The translations under genes were made by a program, and so were the position numbers. Source: Neoechinorhynchus agilis (Eukaryota > Animalia > Acanthocephala). From it: DNA of 23,748 nucleotides. The stretch is taken from positions 1 through 23,748 of the forward strand of contig JBMGUZ010000041.1 in the NCBI GenBank assembly GCA_051530055.1. Direction: 5' to 3'. Under the pieces are notes generated by a model that searched no databases, was not told the DNA's origin, and saw only the letters and a list, made by a program, of their open reading frames with translations. The number at the start of each line of letters is the position of its first letter. Positions within the stretch are counted from its first letter, which is position 1. Shown here piece after piece: positions 62 through 23,748 of this stretch.

Positions 62-406
62 TTACGCGCCACCCCATTGGGCCGTTGTTATCACGCTTGC
101 CGTGTTGCCCCGTTGAATAGCCACACTCAAGCGTTGGATGAGGTAGTTCCTTTGTCTGTGATCTCCGCTGGCTTTTATGAGTAGTCGGCCTATCTCCGCG
201 CAAAATTTCTTTGCCGAAACTCCAAATGCCCCATTTGTCTCCACACCGAAAGGAAGGAATAGGTGAGTCTTTTCCAGCTCAGCGTATTTCGCTCTCTCCT
301 CCCCGACCGCCGTCGCAGCCCCTCCCGGTCCCGATATTGCATCACTTCGGCTGGAGGGTGCTAACGAATCGACGCATGTGGCGTCCCAGATAAGGCATTT
401 TCCTCC
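62..406 (-). mobile_element. 3' fragment of a CRE-type non-LTR retrotransposon (C-terminal part of the restriction-like endonuclease), inserted into the Gypsy integrase
   Basis: The last ~115 aa of ORF 62..1204 read GKCLIWDATCVDSLAPS...ERAKYAEL...FLPFGVETNGAFG...QRLSVAIQRGNTASV, matching the C-terminal REL region of CRE-clade elements. The switch from integrase (RSLLCTST) to CRE sequence is at ~406/407. Confidence 0.85.
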
Positions 407-1204
407 AGTAGAGGTACAAAGCAGCGATCTTAGATTTCCCAGAGCTTGTAACAACGCTTCGTCCCACTTTGTTATTGGCCAAGACTTGTCTTCCAATGTT
501 AGGAGGATCGTCTTCCAAAGGGTACCATTGAGACGTTCACATTGTCCATTGGCATGAGGACGATAGGAGGTTGTGTGACTTGAGCATATCCTTAGCGAAG
601 TTAGCCAATCGCGTAATGTTCTAGAGGTGAAGCAGGAGCCGCGATCAGAGTGGATAAAGGAGGGACATCCAAAGAGCGAGAATATTCGTTCGAGGCATAA
701 TTTGACGCTGTCAGCCGAGGTGTCCTTACAAGCGAATGCTATAGGGTAACGAGAAAACTCGTCTATTGCCACGAATAAATATTTGTATCCGTGCGTTGAC
801 GTTGGTAAGGGTCCTTTGAAGTCCACGGAGATTCTCTCCCAGGGCGCCATCGCTTTTATCAATTTCAAGCTCGATTGAGGTTTGAAAAAGCGAGGTTTCA
901 AGTGGCAGCAAATGGGACATTCTGCAGTGATCTTTCGCACGTCATTCAAATCGAACGGTAAGTTTTGCTGTCGAATGAAATGGAGTAGTCTAGTGTTTCC
1001 GGGATGGCCGAGAGACCGATGAACGTCTTTTAGTTTATTGAACGATATGTTCATTGACGCACATACATTTCTCGATAGTGCATCCGCACTCAAATTGTCT
1101 TTACCGGGTCGGAATCGGATACTATAGGAGAACATTGATAACTGTAGCTTCCACCGCAAAATCTTGTCGTTCCGGATCTTCCCGGCGTGTCGTTGATTTA
1201 GCAC
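407..1204 (-). pseudogene. Gypsy pol: end of RNase H plus integrase (HHCC zinc finger and DDE core)
   Basis: KIRNDKILRWKLQL...RPGKDNLSADALSR (RNase H end); HRSLGH...CPIC; SVDFKGP, HSDRGSCF, ANGQCERLNG. Confidence 0.93.
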
Positions 1205-2490
1205 AGCGATTAGCGGTTGGATTTTGCTGGAATAATTAGAAATCCACCGACTGTAATACGCAAAAAAATCCCAATAAACGCCTTAAGGTCGCTTTGTTCG
1301 TTGAAGTTCGGATTTCGTCCAAGGGTTTAAGCCGCGAACGATCTGGTTTCAGCTGTCCTGCGCCGATATCGTATCCTAATACTCGAATGGTTTCTTTGCA
1401 AAACGTACTCTTTGCTTCGTTCAACTTCAATTCGGCAAGCGATGTGACTTTTTTAAAACGGTTTAGATTGACATTGTGTTCTTCACGGGTTTTGTCACAT
1501 ACAATAACGTCGCCCAAATAGGCAAAGGTAGCTTTTAATTCGTTCCCATCGATTACGTGGTTCATGAATCTCTGAAAGGCGGCCACTCCATTTGTCACTC
1601 CCATGGGGATTCGCGTAAAGCGATAGAATTTTCCGCAAGCTTCGAAAGTTGTAAAATTGCGCTCTTTGATCTGTATAGGTACCTGATGGTAAGCGTCTTT
1701 TAGGTCTAAGTGGCTGAGATATCTATATTTTGTGATTTTATTTTGCAAGAGAGCTTAATTTGGGAAGCGGATAAGCGTCCAAGTACGTGATCCTATTAAT
1801 AGTCTGCGAAAAGTCAACGACAAGTCGCTTTTTCCCATTTTCGCGCTTGACGACAATAACTTGGGCTCGCCAAGGTGAGTTCGCGAGTTCTATGACTTGA
1901 TCTCGCAATAGTCGATTGATTTCTGCACGGATAAACGTTGAATTTTCTTCATTGTGCCTTCTCGACTTGGTTACGATCGGAGTCGTGTCTTCGCTCAAAT
2001 TCTCAAAGAGTAGGGGTGAATAGTGAGACTGCTTGGTATTGACCGATGCGATTCGCAGATCTAAACTTTCCATAGTTCCTCCCGGTTTTATCCGCATCTC
2101 AAAATGTAAGCCAATAAAAGGTATTCCAAGGATAACATCGGAACATAAATCGTTTAATAGAAACAATTCCACGTTCAAACAGTTTCTTTGTTCATACTGT
2201 ATGTCCACCAGGCATTTTCCCAACACTTTTCGAGACGAATTACCCGCGGCCATCAGGACGTTGAGATTAACAGGCGTGTAACGTATTCGTAGTTTTCGTG
2301 TCGCGCTCATATCGATGAAGTTTAAAACACTTCCAGTATCCACTAAAGCCGACATTTGACAATTTGAAACATTTATTGAGATTTGAACACGTTTGTCGGA
2401 CTGAGCTTCGAGATTGCTGGTCGCAAGAAAAATCGAAGATACGCTTTTATTCGTCAATTTTCCTTTAGTCTTACAAACCCTAGCAAATGG
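1205..2490 (-). pseudogene. Gypsy pol: aspartic protease and reverse transcriptase, frameshifted
   Basis: ALVDTGSVLNFI and SPWRAQVIVVKR...RLVVDFSQTIN...DAYPLP lie in ORF 1738..2535; LDLKDAYHQV...FAYLGDV lies in ORF 1236..1748. Single-base frameshifts occur near 1744 and in the A7 run at 1262-1268. Confidence 0.92.
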
Positions 2491-3311
2491 CCCTGCTGGG
2501 AGCAGCAGTAACAGACGGCCTCTTTCGCCGGGCACTGAAATCGAGGATTCCGTTTAAGTCCACAGAAATAGCACAGGTTAGTCCCGTTTCGTGACATTTT
2601 CGTTATTTTCGATGGCTGGGTATTTACGGTTGCGTCACATTCAACGGTTTCCAAAATGGAATCCGAGCTATAACCAGGATTGATGAAGCCGACAGAACCA
2701 ACCTCGGGTTTATGGTTGAAATGCGCCAAACTTTCCACCGCATTCTGCATAGATTTTGAGATCGCGATGGCTCTGTTAAGATCCCAATGCTCGTTCTCCA
2801 AAAGTCTTTGGCGGGTAGAGTCAGATCTCAGTCCAGCAATGAACGAATCACGAAGGAAATCGTCCCGAGCTTCCTCAGCGGACACATTTTTGAAATGACA
2901 ATTTTTAGCCAACGATCGGAGTGATTGAATAAATTGGTCGATATCTTCGTTGTCTGCCTGTTTTCGTATGGACAAGAAATACCTGGCCATGACTTCGTTG
3001 CTTTCTTTTAGGAATAAACGATCTAAAGTTTTCAGAGTATCATCTAGAGAGGTCTCCTCTTCGACGAATTCGTAAACGTCCGCGCTTATGTTCAGAAGTA
3101 GAGTGTCGATGGAAACACCTCCATCGATTGATTTCAGAAGGTGTTGGAAATTCCGTCTCCATAACTTGTACTTCTTCAACGCTCCCTCCTCGTGAGGCAA
3201 TACGTTGAATCGTTCAAGACGCCATGAAGGCTTCGAGACGTTGAGCTCGCTCGGTAGCGACAAATTATGGATCACCTTCTTGGAATCCATATCGGAATTG
3301 TTAGTCGTCAT
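2454..3311 (-). pseudogene. Gypsy gag (capsid-like region plus two CCHC-type zinc knuckles)
   Basis: 285-aa ORF with RDSFIAGL and CYFCGLKRNPRFQCPAKEAVCYCCSQQGH (Mag-type double knuckle, first His replaced by Asn). A 1-nt deletion near 2487 separates it from FARVCK in the protease frame. Confidence 0.88.
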
Positions 3312-3481: not shown

Positions 3482-4494
3482 TTTTTTCGCCCCATCTCTA
3501 TCCTTCCCGCGCTCTCCAAGTCTTTGAAAAATGCTTTAAAGCGAGCCTCCTCCCCAATCTCCTAGCTAAACAATTTGGATTTCGCCCTAAATATTCAGCC
3601 ACAGATGTTCTACTCTGCATTTATGACGCGCTCATCTAAAATGTTGATTAACATCACAAGCTTATCGAAGCCTGTTCCGATTTCGGACTGGATGCTTGGA
3701 AAATTCGATGGCTCTTTTCATATTTGACAAGTCGAGCACAATACATAAAATGCAACGCCGCCACCTCAAAGACCATGCTACTATCAAAAGGTGTCCCAAA
3801 AGGAGCCATCCTTTCCCCACTCCTCTTCAACATCTTTCTTAACAGACTCAAACTCCTCTCGAGCGAAACCCGTCTATTCCTGTATGCCGACGACATAACC
3901 CTAGTCACCATTGTACCGGCAAACAAGTCACTGCCTGTTACCCTGGCTGAAATCTCAAACATTTCCGATTTCTGCGACGGCATGAAGTTATCGATCAATT
4001 TCTCGAAATCGTCTGCGATGATCCCGGCTCTTAAAGGAAACCCGTCTTTCTACGCACAACCATATCTACCGAATGCGACAAAACGCGTCGCTAACCTTCG
4101 AATTTTGGGCCTCCAGTTCCAACAAGACCTAAAATGGCATTCCCACGTCTCTTTAGCCATCAGAAAAAATAATTTCAAGACCTACCTCTTAAAACGCCTT
4201 CGTCGTTTTGGGGTGATCCCATCAGATCTAGCGAAATTTTATCTAGCTTACATTTACGCAAGCTAGAAGTTTTCCATAAGAGAGCTGTCAAAATTTGCTC
4301 CGGTGATTTTCTGTCCATGAAAGACACTCCTAACAATTTTCACAAAGCAGAGCAAACGCCTGATGTCCCATCCGCCGCGACTCGTTCCCCATATTACCCA
4401 CCCTCATAGAACGCGCAAGCCATCCTCCTTCAAACCGCGCAAATCGCGAACCAACACCTTCATTCCTTTTTTCCTGCTGCTCAGTCATATTTAA
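3482..4494 (+). mobile_element. Degenerate CR1/L2-group LINE ORF2 fragment (RT and C-terminal region)
   Basis: Across frameshifts and stops: RPISILPALSK, QFGFRPKYSATDVLL, GVPKGAILSPLLFNIF, LYADDITL, LRILGLQFQQDLKWHSHV, HKRAVKI and RTNTFIPFF, the typical ORF2 end. Confidence 0.85.
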
Positions 4495-5413: not shown

Positions 5414-5607
5414 ATGACATTTATCAGAACTGAATACGTTGATGATTTTTGCTCTAATGTAATACGCAGGACCCTCGGAAATTCGAAATAACCGTTCGCC
5501 TATATCACAAGAGATCTCCGACTATCACTGACATACTCAAAAGAAAACCTCAGCAAAACATAAATTCCGACGTAGTATACCGCATCCTCTGCAACGACTG
5601 CGAAATC
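5414..5607 (+). mobile_element. Penelope-like element fragment (linker and start of the GIY-YIG endonuclease), truncated
   Basis: With one frameshift it reads EYVDDFCSNVIRRTL / KFEITVRLYHKRSPTITDILKRKPQQNINSDVVYRILCNDCE. This resembles the PLE pattern PY..G.SE.IRR.L...I.V......TL..LL...K....VVY.IPC..C. It stops before the YIG motif. Confidence 0.65.
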
Positions 5608-5735
5608 ATTCGTAGGTGGGATTGTTAGTTTGTGAGGTTTGGTCTTTCCTCCGGTTCACGATGTTTTGAATTTTTATGTTCAAACATATATTTAAAGTTG
5701 TTTCGTTTTTGTGGTAGAATTGTTTTTGGTCCGTT

Positions 5736-5997
5736 AGTTGATTTTGGTTGGTTAATTTGTAGTTGTTGTTTTCCGCTCTTTCCTCCGAATCAATTCGCAT
5801 TTGGAGGATTGAGCAGTGGGGAAGAAAGATCGGAAGTAGAGATTTGCGCGAGGAACTGAAGGATGGAAAATGTTGGGGCGACGCGAGTGTTGTAGGTGTG
5901 AGCAAAAGGAGAAATTTGTGGTAGAAATTGAAGAAGAGGAAGAGAATGAAGGCGCTTTGAGTGTTTGTGAAAGATTAGAGAGAGGTGTTTTTCTAAG
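5736..5997 (-). repeat. Dispersed repeat, copy 1 (inverted relative to 8202-8451)
   Basis: Its reverse complement aligns to 8202-8451 at roughly 90% identity by eye, with a ~13-nt insertion (gaaaatgttgggg) in this copy. The ORF track shows shared peptides. Confidence 0.9.
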
Positions 5998-6269
5998 AAC
6001 GCGATTTCGGAGGGGCAGATTAGAGCGCACCTCTTGTGAAATGTCTTAAGTTTTTAGAATAGTTTGGAAGAAAATTTGCAGAAGGTTAGATATCGATAGA
6101 TTCGACGATAAAGCTTGTGATTTGACATCCTTTAGGAAAAAGCAGCAGGAGCAAACTTAGGAATTTAAAATCAGCTCTACGCTCAATCACACTTTTTCTG
6201 CATGGGTCAACTTACAACAATAACCGATGGTGATTTCGCATAGAGAAAAGCTAAGACTGCTCTGTGAGA

Positions 6270-7599: not shown

Positions 7600-8201
7600 C
7601 CTCAATCCGACCCCGAACTCGTAGGCCCTCTTACCCTCATCGCAAATTACAGCTTTTTCGGTCTTTTCGCGATGCTCGGCGACAAATACTTCTCCCTCTA
7701 TTTAAGAGCGGCGAATTTTTATGTTGCTGGCTGCGAATGGCGTCCCAGAGAAGGTATTTGCGTTCCCTCGGCACGGGAATATTGTGACACCGTCGATGGA
7801 CTTCGAGTCGGCAAAGTTTGAAAGTCTTTGGGATGTTGGGCACATTCACAGTATTCTAAGAATTACGTTCACTTCGGCGTGTCGTGAGTACCTCCCGCCT
7901 TATTGCCGACAAACGATGGCGTCGAAGGCTCAGAGACACTGCGATCCTTACTGTCTCGTCGGAGAGAAGGGCACCCGCAGAAGCGATTGGGAGAGCGTTG
8001 AGCCAAGCACCCGATTCTCTTGTAGAGATTGCCGACAATCGAGTTCGGTTCACCAGGTCACGAGAATCTGAAATTAAAGAGTTATGAATTCTAGCGACGA
8101 GGGGTGAGTCCCAAACTGATTGTTTGCAACCATTGACGGGTACCCTGCTCGCTACCGGAATCTTCGCACCAAAGATTGAGAACCTCCTTCGAACTTGTTG
8201 C
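7600..8201 (-). mobile_element. Decayed CRE-type non-LTR retrotransposon 3' region
   Basis: QSVWDSPLV...RLSAISTRESGAWLNALPIASAGALLSDETVRIAVSL, then in shifted frames RYSRHAEVNVIL, DSKSIDGVTIFP and KYLLWDA. Confidence 0.82.
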
Positions 8202-8451
8202 CTTAGAAAAACACCTCTCTCTAATCTTTCACAAACACTCAAAGCACCTTCATTCTCTCCCTCCTCTTCAATTTCTACCACAAATTTCTCCTTTTGCTCA
8301 CACTTACAACACTTGCGTCGCATCCTTCAGTTCCTCGCGCAAATCTCTACTTCCGATCTTTCTTCCCCACTGCTCAATCCTCCAAATGCAAATTGATTCG
8401 GGGGAAAGAGCGGAAACCAACAAGTACAAAATTAACCAACCAAAATCAACT
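8202..8451 (+). repeat. Dispersed repeat, copy 2 (inverted relative to 5736-5997)
   Basis: cttagaaaaacacctctctctaatc...caaaatcaact matches the reverse complement of 5736-5997. Confidence 0.9.
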
Positions 8452-8666
8452 TACCTAAGGTACACGGTTCGGTGACTTATGCTTTTTCCTCTTTTTATTA
8501 TATAATTAAAGTGTTTGCTAAAATATTGGTCCCCTTTGCTAAATGAGATGTGAGCAATCACAGAGACTTTGCCATTGTAGTTCAATCGACGTCGAAATGC
8601 ATCTCTTTAATGCTTATGGAGACTTCTACACTTTACGTACTTATAAAGTTCCTCTTCATTTTAGAG

Positions 8667-9488: not shown

Positions 9489-9758
9489 TTACGTTATGGA
9501 GCATCCATCCTGATTCCCTCCATACTGACCAGGTGAGGAGTATGTTTGGCAACCATATCGCGGATAATTGTAACCTTGATAGTATCCATAGCTTGGATAT
9601 CTCTGTCCATGGTGCTGTCCATGGTGCCCATGGTGTCCATGGTGCCCATGTTGTCCACGGTAGCCACCATAATACATTCCAGGGTATACAGCGGGTAAGG
9701 CAGAAAAGTTGCCAGAAGAGCTTCTACGCATGACTTCAACAGGATTTCTAGTTTTTCT
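9489..9758 (-). CDS. Gly/Tyr/His-rich low-complexity peptide, probably the last exon of an unidentified gene
   Basis: Frame ...NPVEVMRRSSSG...YYGGYRGQHGHHGHHGHHGQHHGQRYPSYGYYQGYNYPRYGC...GCSIT*. Acceptor-like AG dinucleotides lie at 9759-9760 and 9748-9749. AATAAA lies ~35 nt past the stop (9450-9455). Confidence 0.6.
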   Translation of the reverse strand, partial: RKTRNPVEVMRRSSSGNFSALPAVYPGMYYGGYRGQHGHHGHHGHHGQHHGQRYPSYGYYQGYNYPRYGCQTYSSPGQYGGNQDGCSIT

Positions 9759-10993: not shown

Positions 10994-12493
10994 ATGGCTG
11001 AAATAAAGCAGGAGAAGGTAAGTCTGGAGGCTGACAGAGCGAACAATCCTGATATGAATGTGCCGGTATCAATACATTCAAGTAGCCACATTGAATTGGC
11101 AGTTCGTCGTAATGTGAAGACGAACACGTCTGCATGCCATTCGAGTCGATATGTTTCATGTAATCGTGATTGATCAATTGATCTCCAAATCGATCATTCA
11201 TGGAATAAACCTGATATTCGTCAAACGGGAACTCAGACGTCCAATGGAATTGGTGGATTTATTCCGTTTCCCGTTGGTATTCCGGTCCCCATTCCAATGT
11301 GCATGTTTCGATACTTTACACCGCGTCCAATCCCTTTGCCGATTCCATTGCCGATTCCGGTCTTTCTACCTGTTGGAGAAAAAAGATTTAAAGAACTAAT
11401 CGATCGATCGGTGAAAAATGAACCAACTGAAGAGCAAAGTGAGCACTTTAGTGAAATAGAAAAAGAAGAACAATGTACAGTAGAAACTCGACGGTTACCA
11501 AACCAGTTAGAAATGCCTCCTTCGGTCGACGAATTTTTCATTTCGACCGATAAAGAGCACAACTTAACACTGGGCGCTCAGCTGTTTCAGAGTTTTGTAC
11601 AAACCTACCGCCGTAAGGATCCGTCTATTCCAAAAACATTCCCTGAGTTCAGTGTTGAACAGCTAAGTAAATCTTTGCTTAGATTCGCTATCCAACTGAA
11701 AAAATCCGACGGAACACTGTGCTCCCCAGAAGTTCTCTATTTCGTATCTGTTAGTGTTCACTATTTTCTGAGATCGATCGGAAGGGAGGAAGACATCCTG
11801 TACGATCCTGAATTCAACGCTTTTTCACAATTCGTTTTTGATCGAATCCAACATTGCACTGTTCAAATCGATCCTCGAGACAATCGAGTATATTCTCGTA
11901 TTAATGAAGAAATCTTATGGAAATCGTATATGCTTGGCGCTCATTCACCCAGAACATTACTGAATACTTTGTTTTACATTAACATCAAATGCTTTCTTAT
12001 TCTTAACATTCAGGATCACTACGACCTCACTTTCGCTAATGTCCGCCGTCATGTAAAACGATGGGTCGTACCAATCGATAGCGAGGATCAAAAATTAAAT
12101 GAAAGTGAAAGCAGTCATAATGAAAATCAGCACTATAAGGAAGTGAGCAGGCAGCGGTTCATTCGCTATTATCCAACGCGCGACCCGGATCTTATCTTTG
12201 AACAAATAGAAGACCGATCCTTTGCCATGCATTGCGCATGCCGCATTTTCGAATTCTACATCTCCAAGTGCCCAGTTTCTTTACGGCATTCCGAACATTG
12301 CATCTATTTAGAACCCGAAAAGTCCGTTATGCCAGAATCACCGATTTGGTTCACCAGCAAAGCCGTTTCAGAGATGACACTAACCAAAATGATGCTCCAA
12401 ACGAGACTAATCAAGGAAATGTCGGAACTCGAAATCGCTTTTGCTAGTCAAAGCGGAAGCAGTACAGCAGCAGGACAGACAACAGCCGCCTAA
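10994..12493 (+). CDS. ZMYM: ZMYM2/3/4-Woc family protein (Pro-rich segment and DUF3504 domain); 5' structure uncertain (in-frame TGA at 11171)
   Basis: IPFPVGIPVPIPM...PIPLPIPVFLP, LGAHSPRTLLNTLFYINIKCF...DHYDLTFANV and CRIFEFYISKCPVSLR...IYLEPEKSVMPESPIWF match the ZMYM/Woc C-terminus. Upstream ATG at 10994 (MAEIKQEK) is in the same frame. Confidence 0.85.
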
Positions 12494-12541
12494 CTGGTCG
12501 GAAATGGAACAAACGACAGTTAGCGTTGTCGATTTCAAACG

Positions 12542-12547
12542 AATAAA
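12542..12547 (+). terminator. Probable polyadenylation signal of the ZMYM-family gene
   Basis: AATAAA ~50 nt after the stop codon at 12493. Confidence 0.55.
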
Positions 12548-13030
12548 ACATTTAAAGAATTGTTTTGGAAAAAAACGAAGATCAGCATCAAATTAGAGTG
12601 ACGTAAGATCAATGCGATTTGCACACTCGAAAATGTTACCATACAACATAAACATTCCATTTGACAAGGCAAAAAATATTATCACAACCATCTCACACCA
12701 AAGATACCAGCCGACAACAAAATAAGCAAAATGAGAGAAATTTTAATAATAAAAAAAGTCGTATAATTCAATTTTTGAAACTTTAGAATTCTAAAAAATG
12801 CACATAAGAAAAAATTACGTCGATAATTCCGAAGACCATCGCGAAGATCGCATTTCATCATAGTAAATTAAAGGATAAAATATCACAAAAGGGAGAATTC
12901 GCCCGAGATTTCAATCGCTAAGAATTCAATTACAAATTAAGAACCGAAATCTCGATATCATCATTCGTTCACTAGAACGAAAGTAAGATTTTTGAGAAAT
13001 TAATCATCTCATCTCAAAGAATTCTAAAGA

Positions 13031-13098
13031 ATGCTCAGAAGAAAAACTTTCGTCAGTAAATCCGAAGACCATCGCGAAGATCGCATTTCATCATAGCA
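13031..13098 (-). ncRNA. SNORD35: SNORD35/snR73-like box C/D snoRNA (representative intact copy)
   Basis: Minus strand: C box ATGATGA (13094-13088), guide TCGCGATGGTCT (13077-13066), D' CGGA (13064-13061), C' CTGACGA (13056-13050), D CTGA (13038-13035), short TGC/GCA terminal stem. The guide pairs with 28S AGACCGUCGUGA (2 G-U), and D'+5 falls on the first C (yeast Cm2959). Confidence 0.82.
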
Positions 13099-16000
13099 AA
13101 TTAAAGGATCAAATAGCAAAAAAAGAGAATTCGCTAGAGATTTCAATCGCTAAGAATTCGAGTACAAATTAACATCAGAAATCTCGATATCATCATTCGT
13201 TCAGTAGAACGAAAGTTAGATTTTTGAGAAATTCATCACCGCACCTCAAAGAATTCTAAAGAATGCTCACAAGAAAATCGTTCGTCAATAAATACGAAGA
13301 CCATCGCGAAGATCGCATTTCATCATAGCAAATTAAAGGACAAAAAAAGCACAAAAAGGAGAATTCGCACGACATTTCAATCGCCAAGAATTCAAGTACA
13401 AATTAAGATAATAAATCTCGATATTATCAATCGTTCACTAGATCGAAAGTTAGATTTTTGAGAAATTCATCATCTCATCTCAAAGAATTCTAAAGAATGC
13501 TCACAAGAAAAACTTTGGTCAATAAATCCGAAGACCATCGCGAAGATCGAATTTCATCATAAAAAATTAAAGGATAAAAAAGCACAAAAAGAAGAATTCG
13601 CACGACATTTCAATCGCCAAGAATTCAAGCACAAATTAAGATCATAAATCTCGATATCATCATTCGTTCACTAGAACGAAAGTTAGATTTTTGAGAAATT
13701 ACTCATCTCATCTCCAAGAATTCTAAAGAATGCTCAGAAGCAAAACTTTCGTCAATAAATCCGAAGACCATCGCGAAGATCGCATTTCATCACTGCAAAT
13801 TAAAGGATAAAATATCACAAAAGGGAGAATTAACCCGAGAATTTAATCGCTAAGAATTCAAGTACGAATTAACATCAGAAATCTCGATATCATCATTCGT
13901 TCAGTAGAACGAAAGTTAGATTTTTGAGAAATTCATCATCTCACCTCAAAGAATTCTAAAGAATGCTCACAAGAAAATCGTTCGTCAATAAATAAGACCA
14001 TCGCGAAGATCGCATTTAATCATACCAGATTAAAGGATAAAATAGCACAAAAGTTAGAAGTCGCCCGAAACTTCAATCGCTAACAACTCTATTAAAAATT
14101 AAGATCAGAAATCTCGATATCATCATTCGTTCAGTAGAACGAAAGTTAGATTTTTGAGAAATTCATCATATCATCTAAAGAATTCTAAAGAATGCTCAGA
14201 AGCAAAACTTTCGTCAATAAATCCGAAGACCATCGCGAAGATCGCATTTCATCATAGCAAATTGAAGGATAAAATAGCAAAAAAAGAGAATTCGCCCGAG
14301 ATTTCAACCGCTAAGAATTCCAGTACAAATTAAGATTAGAAATCTCGACATCATCATTCGTTCAGTGGAACGGAAGTTAGATTTTTGAGAAATTCATCAT
14401 CTCATGTAAAGAATTTCAAGGAATGCTCAGAAGCAAAACTTTGGTCAATAAATCCGAAGACCATCGCGAAGATCGAATTTAATCACAGCAAATTAAAGGA
14501 TAAAATATCACAAAATAGAGAATTTGCCCGAGATTTCAATCGCTAAGAATTCAAGTACAAATGAAGATCAGAAATCTCGATATCATCATTCGTTCAGTAG
14601 AACGAAAGTTAGATTTTTGAGAAATTCATCATCTCATCCCAAAGAATTCTAAAGAATGCTCACAAGAAAAACTTTCGTCAATAAATCCGAAGACCATCGC
14701 GAAGATCGCATTTCATCATAGCAAATTAAAGGATAAAATAGCACAAAAAGAAGAATTCGCCCGACATTTCAATCGCCAAGAATTCAAGTACAAATTAAGA
14801 TCAGAAATCTCGATATCATCATTCGTTCAGTAGAACGAAAGTTAGATTTTTGAGAAATTCATCATCTCATCTAAAGAATTCTAAAGAATGCTCAGAAGCA
14901 AAACTTTCGTCAATAAATCCGAAGACCATCGCGAAGATCGCATTTCATCACAGCAAATTAAAGGATAAAATATCACAAAATAGAGAATTTGCCCGAGATT
15001 TCAATCGCTAAGAATTCAAGTACAAATGAAGATCAGAAATCTCGATATCATCATACGTTCAGTAGAACGAAAGTAAGATTTTTGAGAAATTCATCATCTC
15101 ATCTCAAAGAATTCTAAAGAATGCTCACAAGAAAAACTTTCGTCAATAAATCCGAAGACCATCGCGAAGATCGCATTTCATCATAGCAAATTAAAGGATA
15201 AAAAAGCACAAAAAGGAGAATTCGCACGACATTTCAATCGCCAAGAATTCAAGTACAAATTAAGATCATAAATCTCGATATTATCAATCGTTCACTAGAT
15301 CGAAAGTTAGATTTTTGAGAAATTCATCATCTCATCCCAAAGAATTCTAAAGAATGCTCACAAGAAAAACTTTCGTCAATAAATCCGAAGACCATCGCGA
15401 AGATCGCATTTCATCATAGCATATTAAAGGATAAAAAGGCACAAAAAGGAGAATTCGCACGACATTTCAATCGCCAAGAATTCAAGTACAAATTAAGATC
15501 AGAAATCTCGATATTATCAATCGTTCACTAGAACGAAAGTTAGATTTTTGAGAAATTACTCATCTCATCTCCAAGAATTCTAAAGAATGCTCAGAAGCAA
15601 AACTTTCGTCAATAAATCCGAAGACCATCGCGAAGATCGCATTTCACCACTGCAAATTAAAGGATAAAATATCACAAAAGGGAGAATTAACCCGAGAATT
15701 TAATCGCTAACAACTCTACTAAAAATTAAGATCAGAAATCTCGATATCTTCATTCGTTCTGTAGAATGAAAGTTTGATTTTTGAGAAATTCATCATCTCA
15801 TCTAAAGAATTCTCACAAGAAAATCGTTCGTCAATTAATCCGAAGACCATCGCGAAGATCGCATTTCATCACTGCAAATTAAAGTATAAAATATCACAAA
15901 ATAGAGAATTTGCCCGAGATTTCAATCGCTAAGAATTCAAGTACAAATGAAGATCAGAAATCTCGATATAATCATTCGTTCAGTTGAACGAAAGTACGAT

Positions 16001-19000
16001 TTTTGAGAAATTCATCATCTCAAAGAATTCTAAAGAATGATCACAAGAAAAACTTTCGTCAATAAATCCGAAGACCATCGCGAAGATCGCATTTCATCAT
16101 AGCAAATTAAAGGATAAAAAAACACAAAAAGGAGAATTCGCCCGACATTTCAATCAAAAAAAATTCAAGTACAAATTAAGGTCAGAAATCTCGATATCAT
16201 CATTTGTTCAGTAGAACGAAAGTAAGATTTTTGAGAAATTACTCATCTCATCTCCAAGAATTCTAAAGAATGATCACAAGAAAAACTTTCGTCAATAAAT
16301 CCGAAGACCATCGTGAAGATCGCATTTCATCATAGCAAATTAAAGGATAAAAAAGCACAAAAAGGAGAATTCGCACGACATTTCAATCCCCAAGAATTCA
16401 AGTACAAATTAAGATCATAAATCTCGATATTATCAATCGTTCACTAGATCGAAAGTAAGATTTTTGAGAAATTCATCATCTCATCCCAAAGAATTCGAAA
16501 GAATGCTCACAAGAAAAACTTTCGTCAATAAATCCGAAGACCATCGCGAAGATCGCATTTCATCATAGCACATTAAAGGATAAAAAAACACAAAAAGGAG
16601 AATTCGCCCGACATTTCAATCGCACAGAATTCAAATACAAATTAAGATCAGAAATCTCGATATCATCATTCGTTCAGTAGAACGAAAGTAAGATTTTTGA
16701 GAAATTAATCATCTCATCTCAAAGAATTCAAAAGAATGCTAACGAGAAAAACTTTCGTCAATAAATCCGAAGACCATCGCGAAGATCGCATTTAATCACT
16801 GCAAGTTAAAGGATAAAATATCACAAAAGGGAGAATTAACCCGAGATTTTAATCGCTAAGAATTCAAGTACGAATTAACATCAGAAATTTCGACATCATC
16901 ATTCGTTCAGTAGAACGAAAGTTAGATTTTTGAGAAATTCATCATCTCATCTCAAAGAATTCTAAAGAATGCTCATAAGAAAAACTTTCGTCAAAAAACC
17001 CGAAGACCATCGTGAAGATGGCATTTCATCCTAGCAAATTAAAGGATAAAAAAGAACAAAAAAGAGAATTCGCCCGACATTTCAATCGCCAAGAATTCAA
17101 GTACAAATTAAGATGAGAAATCTCGATATCATCATTCGTTCAGTAGAACGGAAGTTAGATTTTTGAGAAATTCATCATCTCATGTAAAGAATTCTAAAGA
17201 ATGCTCAGAAGAAAAACTTTGGTCAATAAATCCGAAGACCATCGCGAAGATCGCATTTCATCATAGCAAATTAAAGGATAAAATAGCAAAAAAAGAGAAT
17301 TCGCTAGAGATTTCAATCGCTAAGAATTCCAGTACAAATTACCATCATAAATCTCGATATCATCATACGTTCAGTAGAACGAAAGTAAGATTTTTGAGAA
17401 ATTCATCATCTCATCTAAAGAATTCTAAAGAATGCTCAGAAGCAAAACTTTCGTCAGTAAATCCGAAGACCATCGCGAAGATCGCATTTCATCATAGCAA
17501 ATTAAAGGATAAAATAGCAAAAAAAGAGAATTCGCTAGAGATTTCAATCGCTAAGAATTCCAGTACAAATTACCATCATAAATCTCGATATCATCATTCG
17601 TTCAGTAGAACGAAAGTTAGATTTTTGAGAAATTCATCATCTCACCTCAAAGAATTCTAAAGAATGCTCACAAGAAAATCGTTCGTCAATAAATAAGAAG
17701 ACCATCGCGAAGATCGCATTTAATCATACCAGATTAAAGGATAAAATAGCACAAAAGTTAGAAGTCGCCCGAAACTTCAATCGCTAACAACTTCATTAAA
17801 AATTAAGATCAGAAATCTCGATATCATCATTCGTTCAGCAGAACGAAAGTTAGATTTTTGAGAAATTCATCATATCATCTAAAGAATTCTAAAGAATGCT
17901 CAGAAGCAAAACTTTCGTCAATAAATCCGAAGACCATCGCGAAGATCGCATTTCATCATAGCAAATTGAAGGATAAAATAGCAAAAAAAGAGAATTCGCC
18001 CGAGATTTCAACCGCTAAGAATTCCAGTACAAATTAAGATTAGAAATCTCGACATCATCATTCGTTCAGTGGAACGGAAGTTAGATTTTTGAGAAATTCA
18101 TCATCTCATGTAAAGAATTTCAAGGAATGCTCAGAAGCAAAACTTTGGTCAATAAATCCGAAGACCATCGCGAAGATCGAATTTAATCACAGCAAATTAA
18201 AAGAAAAATATCACAAAATAGAGAATTTGCCCGAGATTTCAATCGCTAAGAATTCAAGTACAAATGAAGATCAGAAATCTCGATATAATCATACGTTCAG
18301 TAGAACGAAAGTAAGATTTTTAAGAAATTCATCATCTCATCTCAAAGAATTCTAAAGAATGCTCACAAGAAAAACTTTCGTCAATAAATCCGAAGACCAT
18401 CGCGAAGATCGCATTCCATCATAGCAAATTAAAGGATAAAATAGCAAAAAAAGAGAATTCGCTAGAGATTTCAATCGCTAAGAATTCGAGTACAAATTAA
18501 CATCAGAAATCTCGATATCATCATTCGTTCAGTAGAACGAAAGTTAAATTTTTGAGAAATTAATCATCGCACCTCAAAGAATTCTAAAGAATGCTCACAA
18601 GAAAATCGTTCGTCAATAAATAAGAAGACCATCGCGAAGATCGCATTTAATCATACCAGATTAAAGGATAAAATAGCACAAAAGTTAGAATTCGCCCGAC
18701 ATTTCAATCACAAAAAATTCAAGTACAAATTAAGGTCAGAAATCTCGATATCATCATTTGTTCAGTACAACGAAAGTAAGATTTTTTAGAAATTAATCAT
18801 CTCATCTCAAAGAATTCTAAAGAATGCTAACAAGAAAAACTTTCGTCAATAAATCCGAAGACCATCGCGAAGATCGCATTTCATCATAGCAAATTAAAGG
18901 ATAAAAAAACACAAAAAGAAGAATTCGCACGACATTTCAATCGCCAAGAATTCAAGTACAAATTAAGATCATAAATCTCGATATCATCAATCGTTCACTA

Positions 19001-21519
19001 GAACGAAAGTTAGATTTTTGAGAAATTACTCATCTCATCTCCAAGAATTCTAAAGAATGCTCAGAAGCAAAACTTTCGTCAATAAATCCGAAGACCATCG
19101 CGAAGATCGCATTTCATCACGGCAAATTAAAGGATAAAATATCACAAAAGGGAGAATTAACCCGAGAATTTAATCGCTAAGAATTCAAGTACGAATTAAC
19201 ATCAGAAATCTCGATATCATCATTCGTTCAGTAGAACGAAAGTTAGATTTTTGAGAAATTCATCATCGCACCTCAAAGAATTCTAAAGAATGCTCACAAG
19301 AAAATCGTTCGTCAATAAATACGAAGACCATCGCGAAGATCGCATTTAATCACACCAGATTAAAGGATAAAATAGCACGAAAGTTAGAAGTCGCCCGAAA
19401 CTTCAATCGCTAACAACTCTATTAAAAATTAAGATCAGAAATCTCGATATCATCATTCGTTCAGTAGAACGAAAGTTAGATTTTTGAGAAATTCATCATC
19501 GCACCTCAAAGAATTCTAAAGAATGCTCACAAGAAAATCGTTCGTCAATAAATACGAAGACCATCGCGAAGATCGCATTTAATCATACCAGATTAAAGGA
19601 TAAAATAGCACAAAAGGTAGAAGTCGCCCGAAACTTCAATCGCTAACAACTCTATTAAAAATTAAGATCAGAAATCTCGATATCATCATTCGTTCAGTAG
19701 AACGAAAGTTAGATCTTTGAGAAATTCATCATATCATCTAAAGAATTCTAAAGAATGCTCAGAAGCAAAACTTTCGTCAATAAATCCGAAGACCATCGCG
19801 AAGATCGCATTTCATCATAGCAAATTGAAGGATAAAATAGCAAAAAAAGAGAATTCGCCCGAGATTTCAACCGCTAAGAATTCCAGTACAAATTAAGATT
19901 AGAAATCTCGACATCATCATTCGTTCAGTGGAACGGAAGTTAGATTTTTGAGAAATTCATCATCTCATGTAAAGAATTTCAAGGAATGTACAGAAGCAAA
20001 ACTTTGGCCAATAAATCCGAAGACCATCGCGAAGATCGAATTTAATCACAGCAAATTAAAGGATAAAATATCACAAAATAGAGAATTTGCCCGAGATTGC
20101 AATCGCTAAGAATTCAAGTACAAATGAAGATCAGAAATCTCGATATAATCATACGTTCAGTAGAACGAAAGTAAGATTTTTAAGAAATTCATCATCTCAT
20201 CTCAAAGAATTCTAAAGAATGCTCACAAGAAAAACTTTCGTCGATAAATCCGAAGACCATCGCGAAGATCGCATTCCATCATAGCAAATTAAAGGATAAA
20301 AAAGAACAAAAAAGAGAATTCGCACGACATTTCAATCGCCAAGAATTCAAGTACAAATTAAGATCATAAATCTCGATATTATCAATCGTTCACTAGATCG
20401 AAAGTTAGATTTTTGAGAAATTCATCATCTCATCCCAAACAATTCTAAAGAATGCTCACAAGAAAAACTTTCGTCGATAAATCCGAAGACCATCGCGAAG
20501 ATCGCATTTCATCATAGCATATTAAAGGATAAAAAGGCACAAAAAGGAGAATTCGCACGACATTTCAATCGCCAAGAATTCAAGTACAAATTAAGATCAG
20601 AAATCTCGATATTATCAATCGTTCACTAGAACGAAAGTTAGATTTTTGAGAAATTACTCATCTCATCTCCAAGAATTCTAAAGAATGCTCAGAAGCAAAA
20701 CTTTCGTCAATAAATCCGAAGACCATCGCGAAGATCGCATTTCACCACTGCAAATTAAAGGATAAAATATCACAAAAGGGAGAATTAACCCGAGAATTTA
20801 ATCGCTAACAACTCTACTAAAAATTAAGATCAGAAATCTCGATATCTTCATTCGTTCTGTAGAATGAAAGTTTGATTTTTGAGAAATTCATCATCTCATC
20901 TAAAGAATTCAAAGAATGCTCACAAGAAAAACTTTCGTCAATAAATCCGAAGACCATCGCGAAGATCGCATTTCATCACTGCAAATTAAAGGATAAAATA
21001 TCACAAAATAGAGAATTCGCCCGAGATTTCAATCGCTAAGAATTCAAGTACAAATTAAGATCAGAAATCTCGATATCATCATTCGTTCAGTAGAACGAAA
21101 GTAAGATTTTTGAGAAATTATCATCTCATCTCAAAGAATTCTAAAGAATGCTCACAAGAAAAACTTTCGTCAATAAATCCGAAGACCATCGCGAAGATCG
21201 CATTTCATCATAGCAAATTAAAGGATAAAATAGCACAAAAAAGAGAATTCGCCCGAGATTTCAATCGCTAAGAATTCAAGTACAAATTAAGATCAGAAAT
21301 CTCGATATCATCATTCGTTCAGTAGAACGAAAGTAAGATTTTTGAGAAATTAATCATCTCATCTCAAAGAATTCTAAAGAATGCTCACAAGAAAAACTTT
21401 CGTCAATAAATCCGAAGACCATCGCGAAGATCGCATTTCATCATAGCAAATTAAAGGATAAAAAAGCACAAAAAGGAGAATTCGCCCGACATTTCAATCG
21501 CCAAGAATTCAAGTACAAA

Positions 21520-21600
21520 TTAAGATCAGAAATCTCGATATCATCATTCGTTCAGTAGAACGAAAGTTAGATTTTTGAGAAATTCATCATCTCATCTCAA
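21520..21600 (-). ncRNA. SNORD59: SNORD59/snR54-like box C/D snoRNA (representative intact copy)
   Basis: Minus strand: C box ATGATGA (21590-21584), guide CTAACTTTCGTTCT (21570-21557), D' CTGA (21555-21552), C' ATGATGA (21547-21541), D CTGA (21529-21526), TTGAGA/TCTTAA terminal stem, 81 nt. The guide is the exact complement of 18S AGAACGAAAGUUAG, and D'+5 falls on the A of yeast Am974. Confidence 0.88.
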
Positions 21601-23748
21601 AGAATTCTAAAGAATGCTCACAAGAAAAACTTTCGTCAATAAATCCGAAGACCATCGCGAAGATCGCATTTCATCATAGCAAATTAAAGGATAAAAAAGC
21701 ACAAAAAGGAGAATTCGCACGACATTTCAATCGCCAAGAATTCAAGTACAAATTAAGATCAGAAATCTCGATATCATCATTCGTTCAGTAGAACGAAAGT
21801 TAGATTTTTGAGAAATTAATCATCTCATCTCAAAGAATTCTAAAGAATGCTCACAAGAAAAACTTCGTCAATAAATCCGAAGACCATCGCGAAGATCGCA
21901 TTTCATCATAGCAAATTAAAGGATAAAATAGCAAAAAAAGAGAATTCGCCAGAGATTTCAATCGCTAAGAATTCCAGTACAAATTAAGATCATAAATCTC
22001 GATATCATCATTCGTTCAGTAGAACGAAAGTTAGATTTTTGAGAAATTCATCATCTCATCTCAAAGAATTCTAAAGAATGCTAACAAGAAAAACTTTCGT
22101 CAATAAATCCGAAGACCATCGCGAAGATAGCATTTCATCATAGCAAATTAAAGGATAAAAAAGCACAAAAAAGAGAATTCGCACGACATTTCAATCGCCA
22201 AGAATTCAAGTACAAATTAAGATCATAAATCTCGATATCATCATTCGTTCAGTAGAACGAAAGTTAGATTTTTGAGAAATTCATCATCTCATCTAAAGAA
22301 TTCTAAAGAATGCTCAGAAGAAAAACTTTCGTCAATAAATCCGAAGACCATCGCGAAGATCGCATTTCATCATAGCAAATTAAAGGATAAAATAGCAAAA
22401 AAAGAGAATTCGCTAGAGATTTCAATCGCTAAGAATTCCAGTACAAATTACCATCATAAATCTCGATATCATCATACGTTCAGTAGAACGAAAGTAAGAT
22501 TTTTGAGAAATTCATCATCTCATCTCAAAGAATTCTAAAGAATGCTCACAAGAAAAACTTTCGTCAATAAATCCGAAGACCATCGCGAAGATCGCATTTC
22601 ATCATAGCAAATTAAAGGATAAAAAAGCAAAAAAGAGAATTCGCTAGAGATTTCAATCGCTAAGAATTCCAGTACAAATTACCATCATAAATCTCGATAT
22701 CATCATACGTTCAGTAGAACGAAAGTAAGATTTTTGAGAAATTCATCATCTCATCTCAAAGAATTCTAAAGAATGCTCACAAGAAAATCGTTCGTCAATA
22801 AACACGAAGACCATCGCGAAGATCGCATTTCATCATAGCAAATTAAAGGATAAAAAAGCACAAAAAGGAGAATTCGCACGACATTTCAATCGCCAAGAAT
22901 TCAAGTACAAATTAAGATAATAAATCTCGATATTATCAATCGTTCACTAGATCGAAAGTTAGATTTTTGAGAAATTCATCATCTCATCTCAAAGAATTCT
23001 AAAGAATGCTACCAAGAAAAACTTTCGTCAATAAATCCGAAGACCATCGCGAAGATAGCATTTCATCATAGAAAATTAAAGGATAAAAAAGCACAAAAAG
23101 AAGAATTCGCACGACATTTCAATCGCCAAGAATTCAAGAACAAATTAAGATCATGAATCTCGATATCATCATTCGTTCACTAGAACAAAAGTTAGATTTT
23201 TGAGAAATTACTCATCTCATCTCCAAGAATTCAAAAGAATGCTCAGAAGCAAAACTTTCGTCAATAAATCCGAATACCATCGCGAAGATCGCATTTCATC
23301 ACTGCAAATTAAAGGATAAAATATCACAAAAGGGAGAATTAACCCGAGATTTTAATCGCTAAGAATTCAAGTACGAATTAACATCAGAAATCTCGATATC
23401 ATCATTCGTTCAGTAGAACGAAAGTTAGATTTTTGAGAAATTCATCATCGCACCTCAAAGAATTCTAAAGAATGCTCACAAGAAAATCGTTCGTCAATAA
23501 ATAAGACCATCGCGAAGATCGCATTTAATCATACCAGATTAAAGGATAAAATAGCACAAAAGGCAGAAGTCGCCCGAAATTTCAATCGCTAACAACTCTA
23601 TTAAAAATTAAGATAAGAAATTTCGACATCATCATTCGTTCAGTAGAACGAAAGTTAGATTTTTGAGAAATTCATCATCTCATCTCAAAGAATTCTAAAG
23701 AATGCTCATAAGAAAAACTTTCGTCAAAAATCCGAAGACCATCGCGAA

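Follow-up and report, generated by a model that had tools for sequence, protein, structure and literature searches.

Tandem array of paired U35- and U59-type box C/D snoRNA genes with satellite-like organisation in the acanthocephalan Neoechinorhynchus agilis

The stretch of DNA analysed here (the window, 23,748 nucleotides) is part of contig JBMGUZ010000041.1 of the Neoechinorhynchus agilis genome assembly GCA_051530055.1, and contains a tandem array whose repeat unit holds two cassettes of the box C/D class of small nucleolar RNA (snoRNA) on the minus strand, one U35/snR73-like (snoRNA B) and one U59/snR54-like (snoRNA A). Tandem Repeats Finder resolved a single array at 12785-23748 with a period of 233 bp, 47.3 copies and 90% matches, which bears out the initial annotation of an amplified U35 plus U59 pair but moves its start from 12771 to 12785. 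The array continues past the end of the window, and its upstream end, in the sense of the minus strand, lies beyond it. When units were anchored on the minus strand, 47 of them were resolved, 222-234 bp long, each with the order snoRNA B, a 12-nt spacer, snoRNA A and a spacer of ~70 nt. At the array edge, the sequence at 12655-12887 (minus strand) is a degenerate terminal unit in which the B half is recognisable and the A half is lost.

The G+C content of the array is 32-34%, with a strong skew of A over T on the plus strand, against 37-48% in the flank. Pairwise identity between units averages 0.90, one pair (u13 and u35) is 100% identical, and near-unchanged blocks of two to three adjacent units recur at lags of 22, 41 and 8/16/24 units, the signature of unequal crossing-over. 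In its long head-to-tail arrangement, short unit, block (higher-order) duplications and divergence between copies, the locus has the properties of a satellite. It also has those of a polycistronic or tandem snoRNA cluster, with 47 units in the window and, within each, a gap of only 12 nt between B and A, too small for separate promoters, so that both RNAs would derive from one precursor. An A/T-rich block, UAUUUUAUCCUUUAAU, located ~10-25 nt upstream of B, is well kept (~0.5 parsimony steps per site) and could conceivably act as a per-unit promoter or processing element. Each 233-bp unit contains the motif GAATTC in three places, ahead of A, behind A and ahead of B, with TC or TT following at every one, which hints at an older, shorter sub-repeat in the spacers. 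The only open reading frames (ORFs) inside the array are short and TTG-started, the longest of 165 amino acids running over two units, and were regarded as spurious. No transfer RNA gene was found in the window, and the array is therefore not linked to one.

snoRNA A measures ~81 nt, as initially annotated, and snoRNA B ~66 nt instead of the ~68 nt first given. The consensus of B reads UGCU-AUGAUGA-AAUGCGAUCUUCGCGAUGGUCUU-CGGA-UUUAUUGACGA-AAGUUUUUCUU-[G/C]UGA-GCA, and that of A UUGAGA-UGAG-AUGAUGA-AUUUCUCAAAAAUCUAACUUUCGUUCUA-CUGA-ACGA-AUGAUGA-UAUCGAGAUUU-CUGA-UCUUAA, so that in consensus both cassettes have the general layout of box C/D RNAs, with a C box near the 5' end, a D box near the 3' end and a short terminal stem. 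The stem of B comprises 3-4 bp, UGC(U)/(A)GCA, and that of A, as read from the sequence, 6 bp, UUGAGA/UCUUAA, at 4 nt from the C box. In the reference unit, u41 (14050-14281, minus strand, as are all positions that follow for it), B occupies 14193-14258, with the C box AUGAUGA at 14255-14249, the pairing segment of the D' guide at 14239-14227, the D' box CGGA at 14225-14222, the D box CUGA at 14199-14196 and the terminal stem UGC/GCA. A occupies 14099-14179, with the C box at 14169-14163, the D' guide at 14150-14135, the D' box CUGA at 14134-14131, the C' box AUGAUGA at 14126-14120, the D guide UAUCGAGAUUU at 14119-14109, the D box CUGA at 14108-14105 and the 3' half of the stem, UCUUAA, at 14104-14099.

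The internal boxes of B, D' (CGGA) and C' (UUGA-like), are degenerate in every copy. Folding energies showed no gain over shuffled sequences for B (z +0.39) or A (z -0.46), which is expected for C/D snoRNAs and hence not informative. Within A's D' guide, the segment UUCGUUC is complementary to GAACGAA, formed by the last two letters of D' and the spacer that follows, and the two can fold into a 7-bp hairpin (e.g., 14141-14127, minus strand); such a hairpin would be predicted to compete with target binding.

The family leads for both RNAs came from Rfam searches at permissive thresholds. Matches of A to snR54 (RF00473) were found in every unit tested, with a best score of 39.0 bits against a gathering threshold of 50 and an E-value of 3.8e-4 when a single unit was searched. 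A's guide and D' box equal the snR54 consensus UAACUUUCGUUCUACUGA letter for letter over 18 letters; the next-best match was plant snoR23, which bears the identical guide, and the SNORD24 covariance model gave no match to A. snoRNA B scored 15.8-18.2 bits with SNORD35 (RF00211, gathering threshold 36) and 18 bits with snR73 (RF01207, gathering threshold 37), matches that are not significant alone (E 0.21 to 7). The guide and D' region of B, CGCGAUGGUCUUCGGAU, aligned to the SNORD35 consensus CACGAUGGUCUUCaGAu, agrees with it in 16 of 18 letters, the two differing letters still pairing as G.U. Covariance models thus lend weight to the initially annotated U59 identity and little to that of U35: formal membership fails for both RNAs, whereas their functional parts match. 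The assignments of B to U35/snR73 and of A to U59/snR54, two families traced to the last eukaryotic common ancestor (PMC3511168), are supported at the level of sequence by guide, register and target.

Guide targets were sought in environmental eukaryotic ribosomal DNA (rDNA) units, fetched from a metagenome collection by a 25-nt pattern and distinct from the worm's own ribosomal RNA (rRNA). Two of these loci (L001 and L044) carry complete 18S, 5.8S and 28S genes as annotated by Rfam, and conservation of the targets rests on these two units together with the universal conservation of the sites. Guides were scanned in a fixed register, with position 5 counted back from the box. The D' guide of A forms a 15-bp duplex with 18S AGAACGAAAGTTAGG, 14 of the pairs being Watson-Crick, and its position 5 faces an A; the D' guide of B forms a 13-bp duplex with 28S AGACCGTCGTGAG (10 Watson-Crick and 3 G.U), and its position 5 faces the first C of GACC in AGACC. 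Both have the properties of box C/D guides, namely at least 10 nt of pairing beside a D or D' box and the position-5 rule. The D guide of A pairs with 28S AGATCTTGGTG (AGAUCUUGGUG) over 11 bp (7 Watson-Crick and 4 G.U), with position 5 opposite a C.

In the yeast modification map, Am974 is assigned to snR54, Cm2959 to snR73, and Cm1437, Am1449 and Gm1450 to U24 (PMC5199042). The spacing to neighbouring modified positions fits this map in both rDNA loci: the C targeted by B is preceded by U and G at -38/-37, by A at -13 and by C at -11, corresponding to Um2921/Gm2922, Am2946 and Cm2948, and relative to the C opposite A's D guide, A and G lie at +12/+13, corresponding to Am1449/Gm1450. The three predicted registers therefore land on the equivalents of yeast 18S Am974, 25S Cm2959 and 25S Cm1437, the first two as initially annotated. 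The D guide of A is kept in 41 of 47 copies, and duplexes of its quality are common by chance in rRNA; a U24-type guide aimed at the Cm1437 equivalent is thus possible only. The D-box guide of B was rejected as a further candidate: it occurs in three variants with no conserved rRNA target, and its 14-bp match, in one rDNA only, overlaps the C' box.

The box and guide motifs might in principle be a chance resemblance within an AT-rich satellite, since UGAUGA and CUGA are short and T-rich guides pair easily through G.U. In shuffle controls, 146 of 2000 shuffled B guides reached the observed run length, so that run length alone does not single out the B guide, and only 6 of 2000 shuffled A guides paired as well anywhere in rRNA. 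What gives the guide evidence its weight is instead that the registers fall on known sites and that the guides agree with curated consensus guides. The initial annotation had judged chance very unlikely from two independent hits, a judgement that the control upholds for A, and that for B has to draw on the known site and the SNORD35 consensus. Two cassettes with the correct box order, spacing and terminal stems, the 18-letter identity of A's guide and D' box with a curated consensus, and three registers on known modified positions among ~5,300 rRNA letters make a fortuitous resemblance exceedingly improbable.

Not every unit holds two complete cassettes, as had been proposed. Strictly canonical C and D boxes are present together in 11 of 47 B and 18 of 47 A copies, and when consensus guides and the internal boxes of A are also required, 10 copies of each remain fully canonical. 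Both RNAs are canonical in three units only, by box and guide scoring: u41, u17 (19613-19844, minus strand) and u38 (14746-14977, minus strand). Completeness fails likewise in the wrecked terminal unit and in the internal boxes of B throughout. A C box of the form RUGAUGA is found in 32/47 B and 33/47 A copies; the D box is present as CUGA in 15/47 B and 27/47 A copies and, in the relaxed form xUGA, in 41 B and 39 A copies. This variation is uneven, being concentrated at three positions: the first of the C box, where A and G are both permitted, the sixth of the C box, where G changes to U, and the first of the D box (C or G in B, C or A in A). The core letters of the K-turn (kink-turn), which form its sheared G.A pairs and U.U pair, are intact in 36/46 B and 33/46 A copies. 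In the C/D K-turn, the sixth letter of the C box pairs with the first of the D box within stem II, which is needed for full assembly of the small nucleolar ribonucleoprotein (snoRNP) and not for the binding of Snu13. If this pair is required, it could form in 17 B and 18 A copies. All five B copies with the C box AUGAUUA have the D box GUGA, which would allow a U.G pair; copies with GUGAUUA do not follow this pattern. Judged from their sequences, a subset of copies is likely usable, and many are defective.

To measure conservation across the array, parsimony steps were counted for each column over a 46-unit tree, with permutation tests. The whole unit averages 1.30 steps per site. The guide segments are the least variable part, with 0.59 steps per site, below the unit mean (permutation P 0.00025), and the 23-nt guide region of B, with 0.35, is the lowest 23-nt window of the unit. 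The K-turn core letters (1.0 steps per site) and the spacers (1.48) do not differ from background. By contrast, positions 1 and 6 of the C box and position 1 of the D box are hypervariable in both snoRNAs, with 5.0 steps per site (higher, P 5e-5), and the two letters of the stem II pair change more than any other columns of the unit. Recombination between units can inflate step counts at old polymorphisms, and the hypervariable box class may represent a few such polymorphisms that have been shuffled among units. The low variability of the guides would be consistent with a locus in which a null copy is harmless and a mis-guiding copy harmful.

The extent of the array beyond the window was estimated from genomic paired-end reads with at least 85% likeness to 576 sampled array bases. 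Genomic depth is ~16 on the unique flank, and the 576 array bases collected ~378,000 base-depths, which corresponds to an array of ~23 kb or roughly 100 units per haploid genome, a rough figure and probably a minimum. About half of this total falls within the window. The array is modest for a satellite, and the massive amplification of the initial annotation thus amounts to about a hundred units and not to thousands.

On its downstream side the array meets a convergent gene (11297-12764, plus strand) with an intron-less ORF of 398 amino acids at 11297-12493, which gave a DUF3504 match (E 4e-35) and a sub-threshold QRICH1-like domain. RNA contigs of this gene, from three libraries, end at 12704/12764 with a run of A, placing the end of the 3' untranslated region at ~12764, ~20 nt from the array. 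The gene is outside the array and fixes its boundary. Its RNA depth is ~250, far above that of the array, where the contigs, which carry no strand information, measure 43-197 nt at depths of 2-8.6, and none, including the longest of 197 nt, spans a full 233-bp unit. One contig (12761-12940, depth 2.4) crosses the single-copy junction, which argues against pure carry-over of DNA and equally fits read-through from the neighbouring gene. All eight RNA libraries listed for the array contain array words. The N. agilis genome paper, which mentions neither snoRNAs nor satellites, used poly-A capture (PMC12690905); if the RNA runs are those of that study, mature snoRNAs would be missing from them.

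These data also bear on whether the units sit in introns of a long non-coding host transcript with small exons in the spacers, as at SNORD115/116. The imprinted loci of eutherians provide an animal precedent, with tens of tandem C/D copies processed from repeated introns (PMC2766290), and the spacer contains a pyrimidine run followed by AG (UUCUUAG). However, a 233-bp unit with a 12-nt gap between B and A leaves no room for an exon there, the other spacer is only ~70 nt long, and no convincing donor site was found in the spacer. The RNA contigs lack splice-like joints, the sole joint being one that skips one repeat unit, and the meeting of the array with the 3' end of the convergent expressed gene leaves no space for a downstream exon. 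The array thus does not qualify as an intron-hosted cluster of the SNORD115/116 type, and we regard such an organisation as very unlikely.

Elsewhere in the window, the body of a long terminal repeat (LTR) retrotransposon lies at 62-3311 (minus strand), with gag-like (zinc knuckle), aspartyl protease, reverse transcriptase and integrase sequences; it is split into four ORFs, indicating that the pol region is interrupted. A separate reverse transcriptase fragment is found at 3724-4266 (plus strand). Two ORF-like stretches at 5606-6030 (minus strand) and 8124-8475 (plus strand) encode nearly the same peptide (…RKTPLSNLSQTLKAPSFS…SSSISTTNFSFCSHLQH…). As an inverted repeat whose two arms lie ~2 kb from each other, they may mark the ends of a mobile element. 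A short tandem repeat of the CCATGGTGC type, with overlapping periods of 9, 12 and 18 in 2-5 copies, lies at 9603-9661.

The initial annotation had left two alternatives, a satellite derived from snoRNAs or an amplified polycistronic snoRNA locus. The evidence remains between these two, and leans toward a working locus with defective copies: with the cassettes, guide-target registers, conservation pattern and copy number described above, the array is probably, though by no means certainly, a locus that encodes two conserved guide RNAs for rRNA methylation in many gene copies, evolving like a satellite and containing a working subset of units. Several observations weigh against this interpretation. 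At gathering thresholds, no Rfam family was reached in the entire window. Within copies, intact C boxes and intact D boxes are statistically independent, and canonical boxes associate only weakly with the consensus A guide (p 0.07). Box columns overall are kept no better than spacers, C-box position 6 and D-box position 1 being hypervariable, and the trace-level contigs of array RNA could stem from read-through or from carried-over DNA.

Most of these points would also fit a dead satellite, seeded by a dicistronic snoRNA pair, with the working U35 and U59 genes located elsewhere, for example in introns. The scarcity of units in which both RNAs are fully canonical (3/47) and block duplications typical of satellites would also agree with this alternative, in which the apparent conservation of the guides would be a product of uneven mutation, or of block duplications in the recent past, and not of selection. 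However, the guides vary significantly less than the remainder of the unit, the least variable window coincides exactly with B's guide, and a mean unit divergence of 10% is enough to erode a neutral guide of 13-15 nt. Furthermore, most box changes fall on the two least critical letters, and over 70% of copies retain the G.A core of the K-turn. The guide conservation, as far as sequence comparison can tell, is hard to reconcile with a fully dead satellite, and we consider this alternative rather unlikely, although much less so than an intron-hosted array.

If the array is a working multi-copy locus, each 233-bp unit would be a minus-strand dicistronic module, in which B would be aimed at the Cm2959 equivalent and A at the Am974 equivalent, and A would probably also carry a weakened U24-type D guide for the Cm1437 equivalent. 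The precursor could run through many units as one long transcript or be made separately from each unit. By analogy with yeast, plants and trypanosomatids, it would be cut in the spacers and trimmed to ends shielded by Snu13, Nop56, Nop58 and fibrillarin; copies with a sound K-turn would yield stable snoRNPs, and the remaining copies would be degraded. Unequal crossing-over would spread blocks of units along with their defects, and with tens of usable copies the loss of any single one would be neutral. A copy with good boxes and an altered guide, in turn, could mis-target methylation, a risk that would explain why the guides are kept better than the boxes. Transcription and processing of the array, and its role in supplying the cell in place of a copy elsewhere, are what we infer from these features.

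A broader proposal may tentatively be derived from this locus, for which we would give somewhat less than even chances: that in this acanthocephalan genes for canonical, universally conserved rRNA-modification snoRNAs have moved wholesale into satellite-like arrays, with tens to ~100 copies per family, and evolve in concert like rDNA or 5S genes, with selection on the guides and tolerance of box-defective copies. The literature searched yielded no account of snoRNA genes organised in this mode in any animal. If this were so, the hypervariability of C-box position 6 and D-box position 1 might tune the number of copies that assemble into snoRNPs.

In well-studied animals, snoRNAs for rRNA methylation are mostly encoded by single genes within housekeeping-gene introns, with a dosage tied to the host gene. 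An animal that supplied its U35-, U59- and perhaps U24-type guides from an array of ~100 copies would break this link. The array would also provide a naturally occurring example of a guide RNA gene under concerted evolution, and could reveal the amount of box decay that is tolerated in a multi-copy snoRNA locus with fixed guides, and whether redundancy combined with the risk of mis-targeting shapes which letters persist. Repeat pipelines mask such arrays as satellites, and essential genes could thereby be missed in annotation.

The component RNAs closely follow known families. snoRNA A shares with SNORD59/snR54 (RF00273/RF00473, clan CL00065) and plant snoR23 the D' guide and D' box UAACUUUCGUUCUACUGA and the order C-guide-D'-C'-D, and its predicted target is that of SNORD59/snR54, the A of 18S rRNA that corresponds to yeast Am974 and human Am1031. 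It differs from SNORD59/snR54 in its score below the gathering threshold (39 vs 50 bits), its shorter interval between D' and C', the additional U24-type guide, and its tens of tandem copies in place of one or two intronic or solitary genes. snoRNA B shares with SNORD35/snR73 (clan CL00056) the D' guide CGCGAUGGUCUU, a non-canonical D' box (CGGA vs the consensus CaGA) and the predicted target, the large-subunit C equivalent to yeast Cm2959 and human Cm4506. Unlike those RNAs, which measure 88-103 nt, it is only ~66 nt long, scores 15.8-18.2 bits where 36-37 are required, has two guide letters changed to G.U wobbles and a majority D box of GUGA, and lies in a dicistronic unit with a U59-type RNA.

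The initial annotation had not recognised such an array as one already described, and this holds for the animal group in the literature searched, where we found no paper on acanthocephalan snoRNA genes, no described tandem array of canonical rRNA-guide snoRNAs in an invertebrate animal and no animal counterpart outside the imprinted loci of eutherians. As a kind, however, tandemly repeated snoRNA clusters are known (PMC2613932, PMC2766290). The polycistronic clusters of trypanosomatids and plants have closely packed snoRNA genes and a single precursor; here the close packing is read from the sequence, and the precursor is presumed. Those clusters mix C/D with H/ACA genes in few repeats with well-kept copies, and belong to protists and plants, whereas the present array has ~100 repeats and belongs to an animal. 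Eutherian mammals possess tandem, imprinted C/D arrays with minimal homology to rRNA, and SNORD115/116 (15q11-q13) and SNORD113/114 (14q32) resemble the present locus in having tens of tandem C/D copies in an animal (PMC2766290). Their members are mostly orphan, imprinted and placed one per intron of a long non-coding transcript, whereas the acanthocephalan units carry two canonical rRNA guides each, with no sign of exons. The units of the eutherian arrays are also far longer than 233 bp.

In its mode of evolution, the locus recalls the arrays of 5S rDNA, of U1/U2 small nuclear RNA and of spliced-leader (SL) RNA, together with the satellites derived from them, which are likewise arranged head to tail, shaped by unequal crossing-over and interspersed with defective copies; the 0.6-kb tandem unit of SL-RNA and 5S genes in Euglena is one such case (cited in PMC2784804). 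These arrays encode another class of RNA and have a known promoter in each unit, whereas here the per-unit promoter is only a candidate. The array is of a known kind, with no description for such an animal in the literature searched; its component RNAs are ordinary, and its layout is unusual for an animal.

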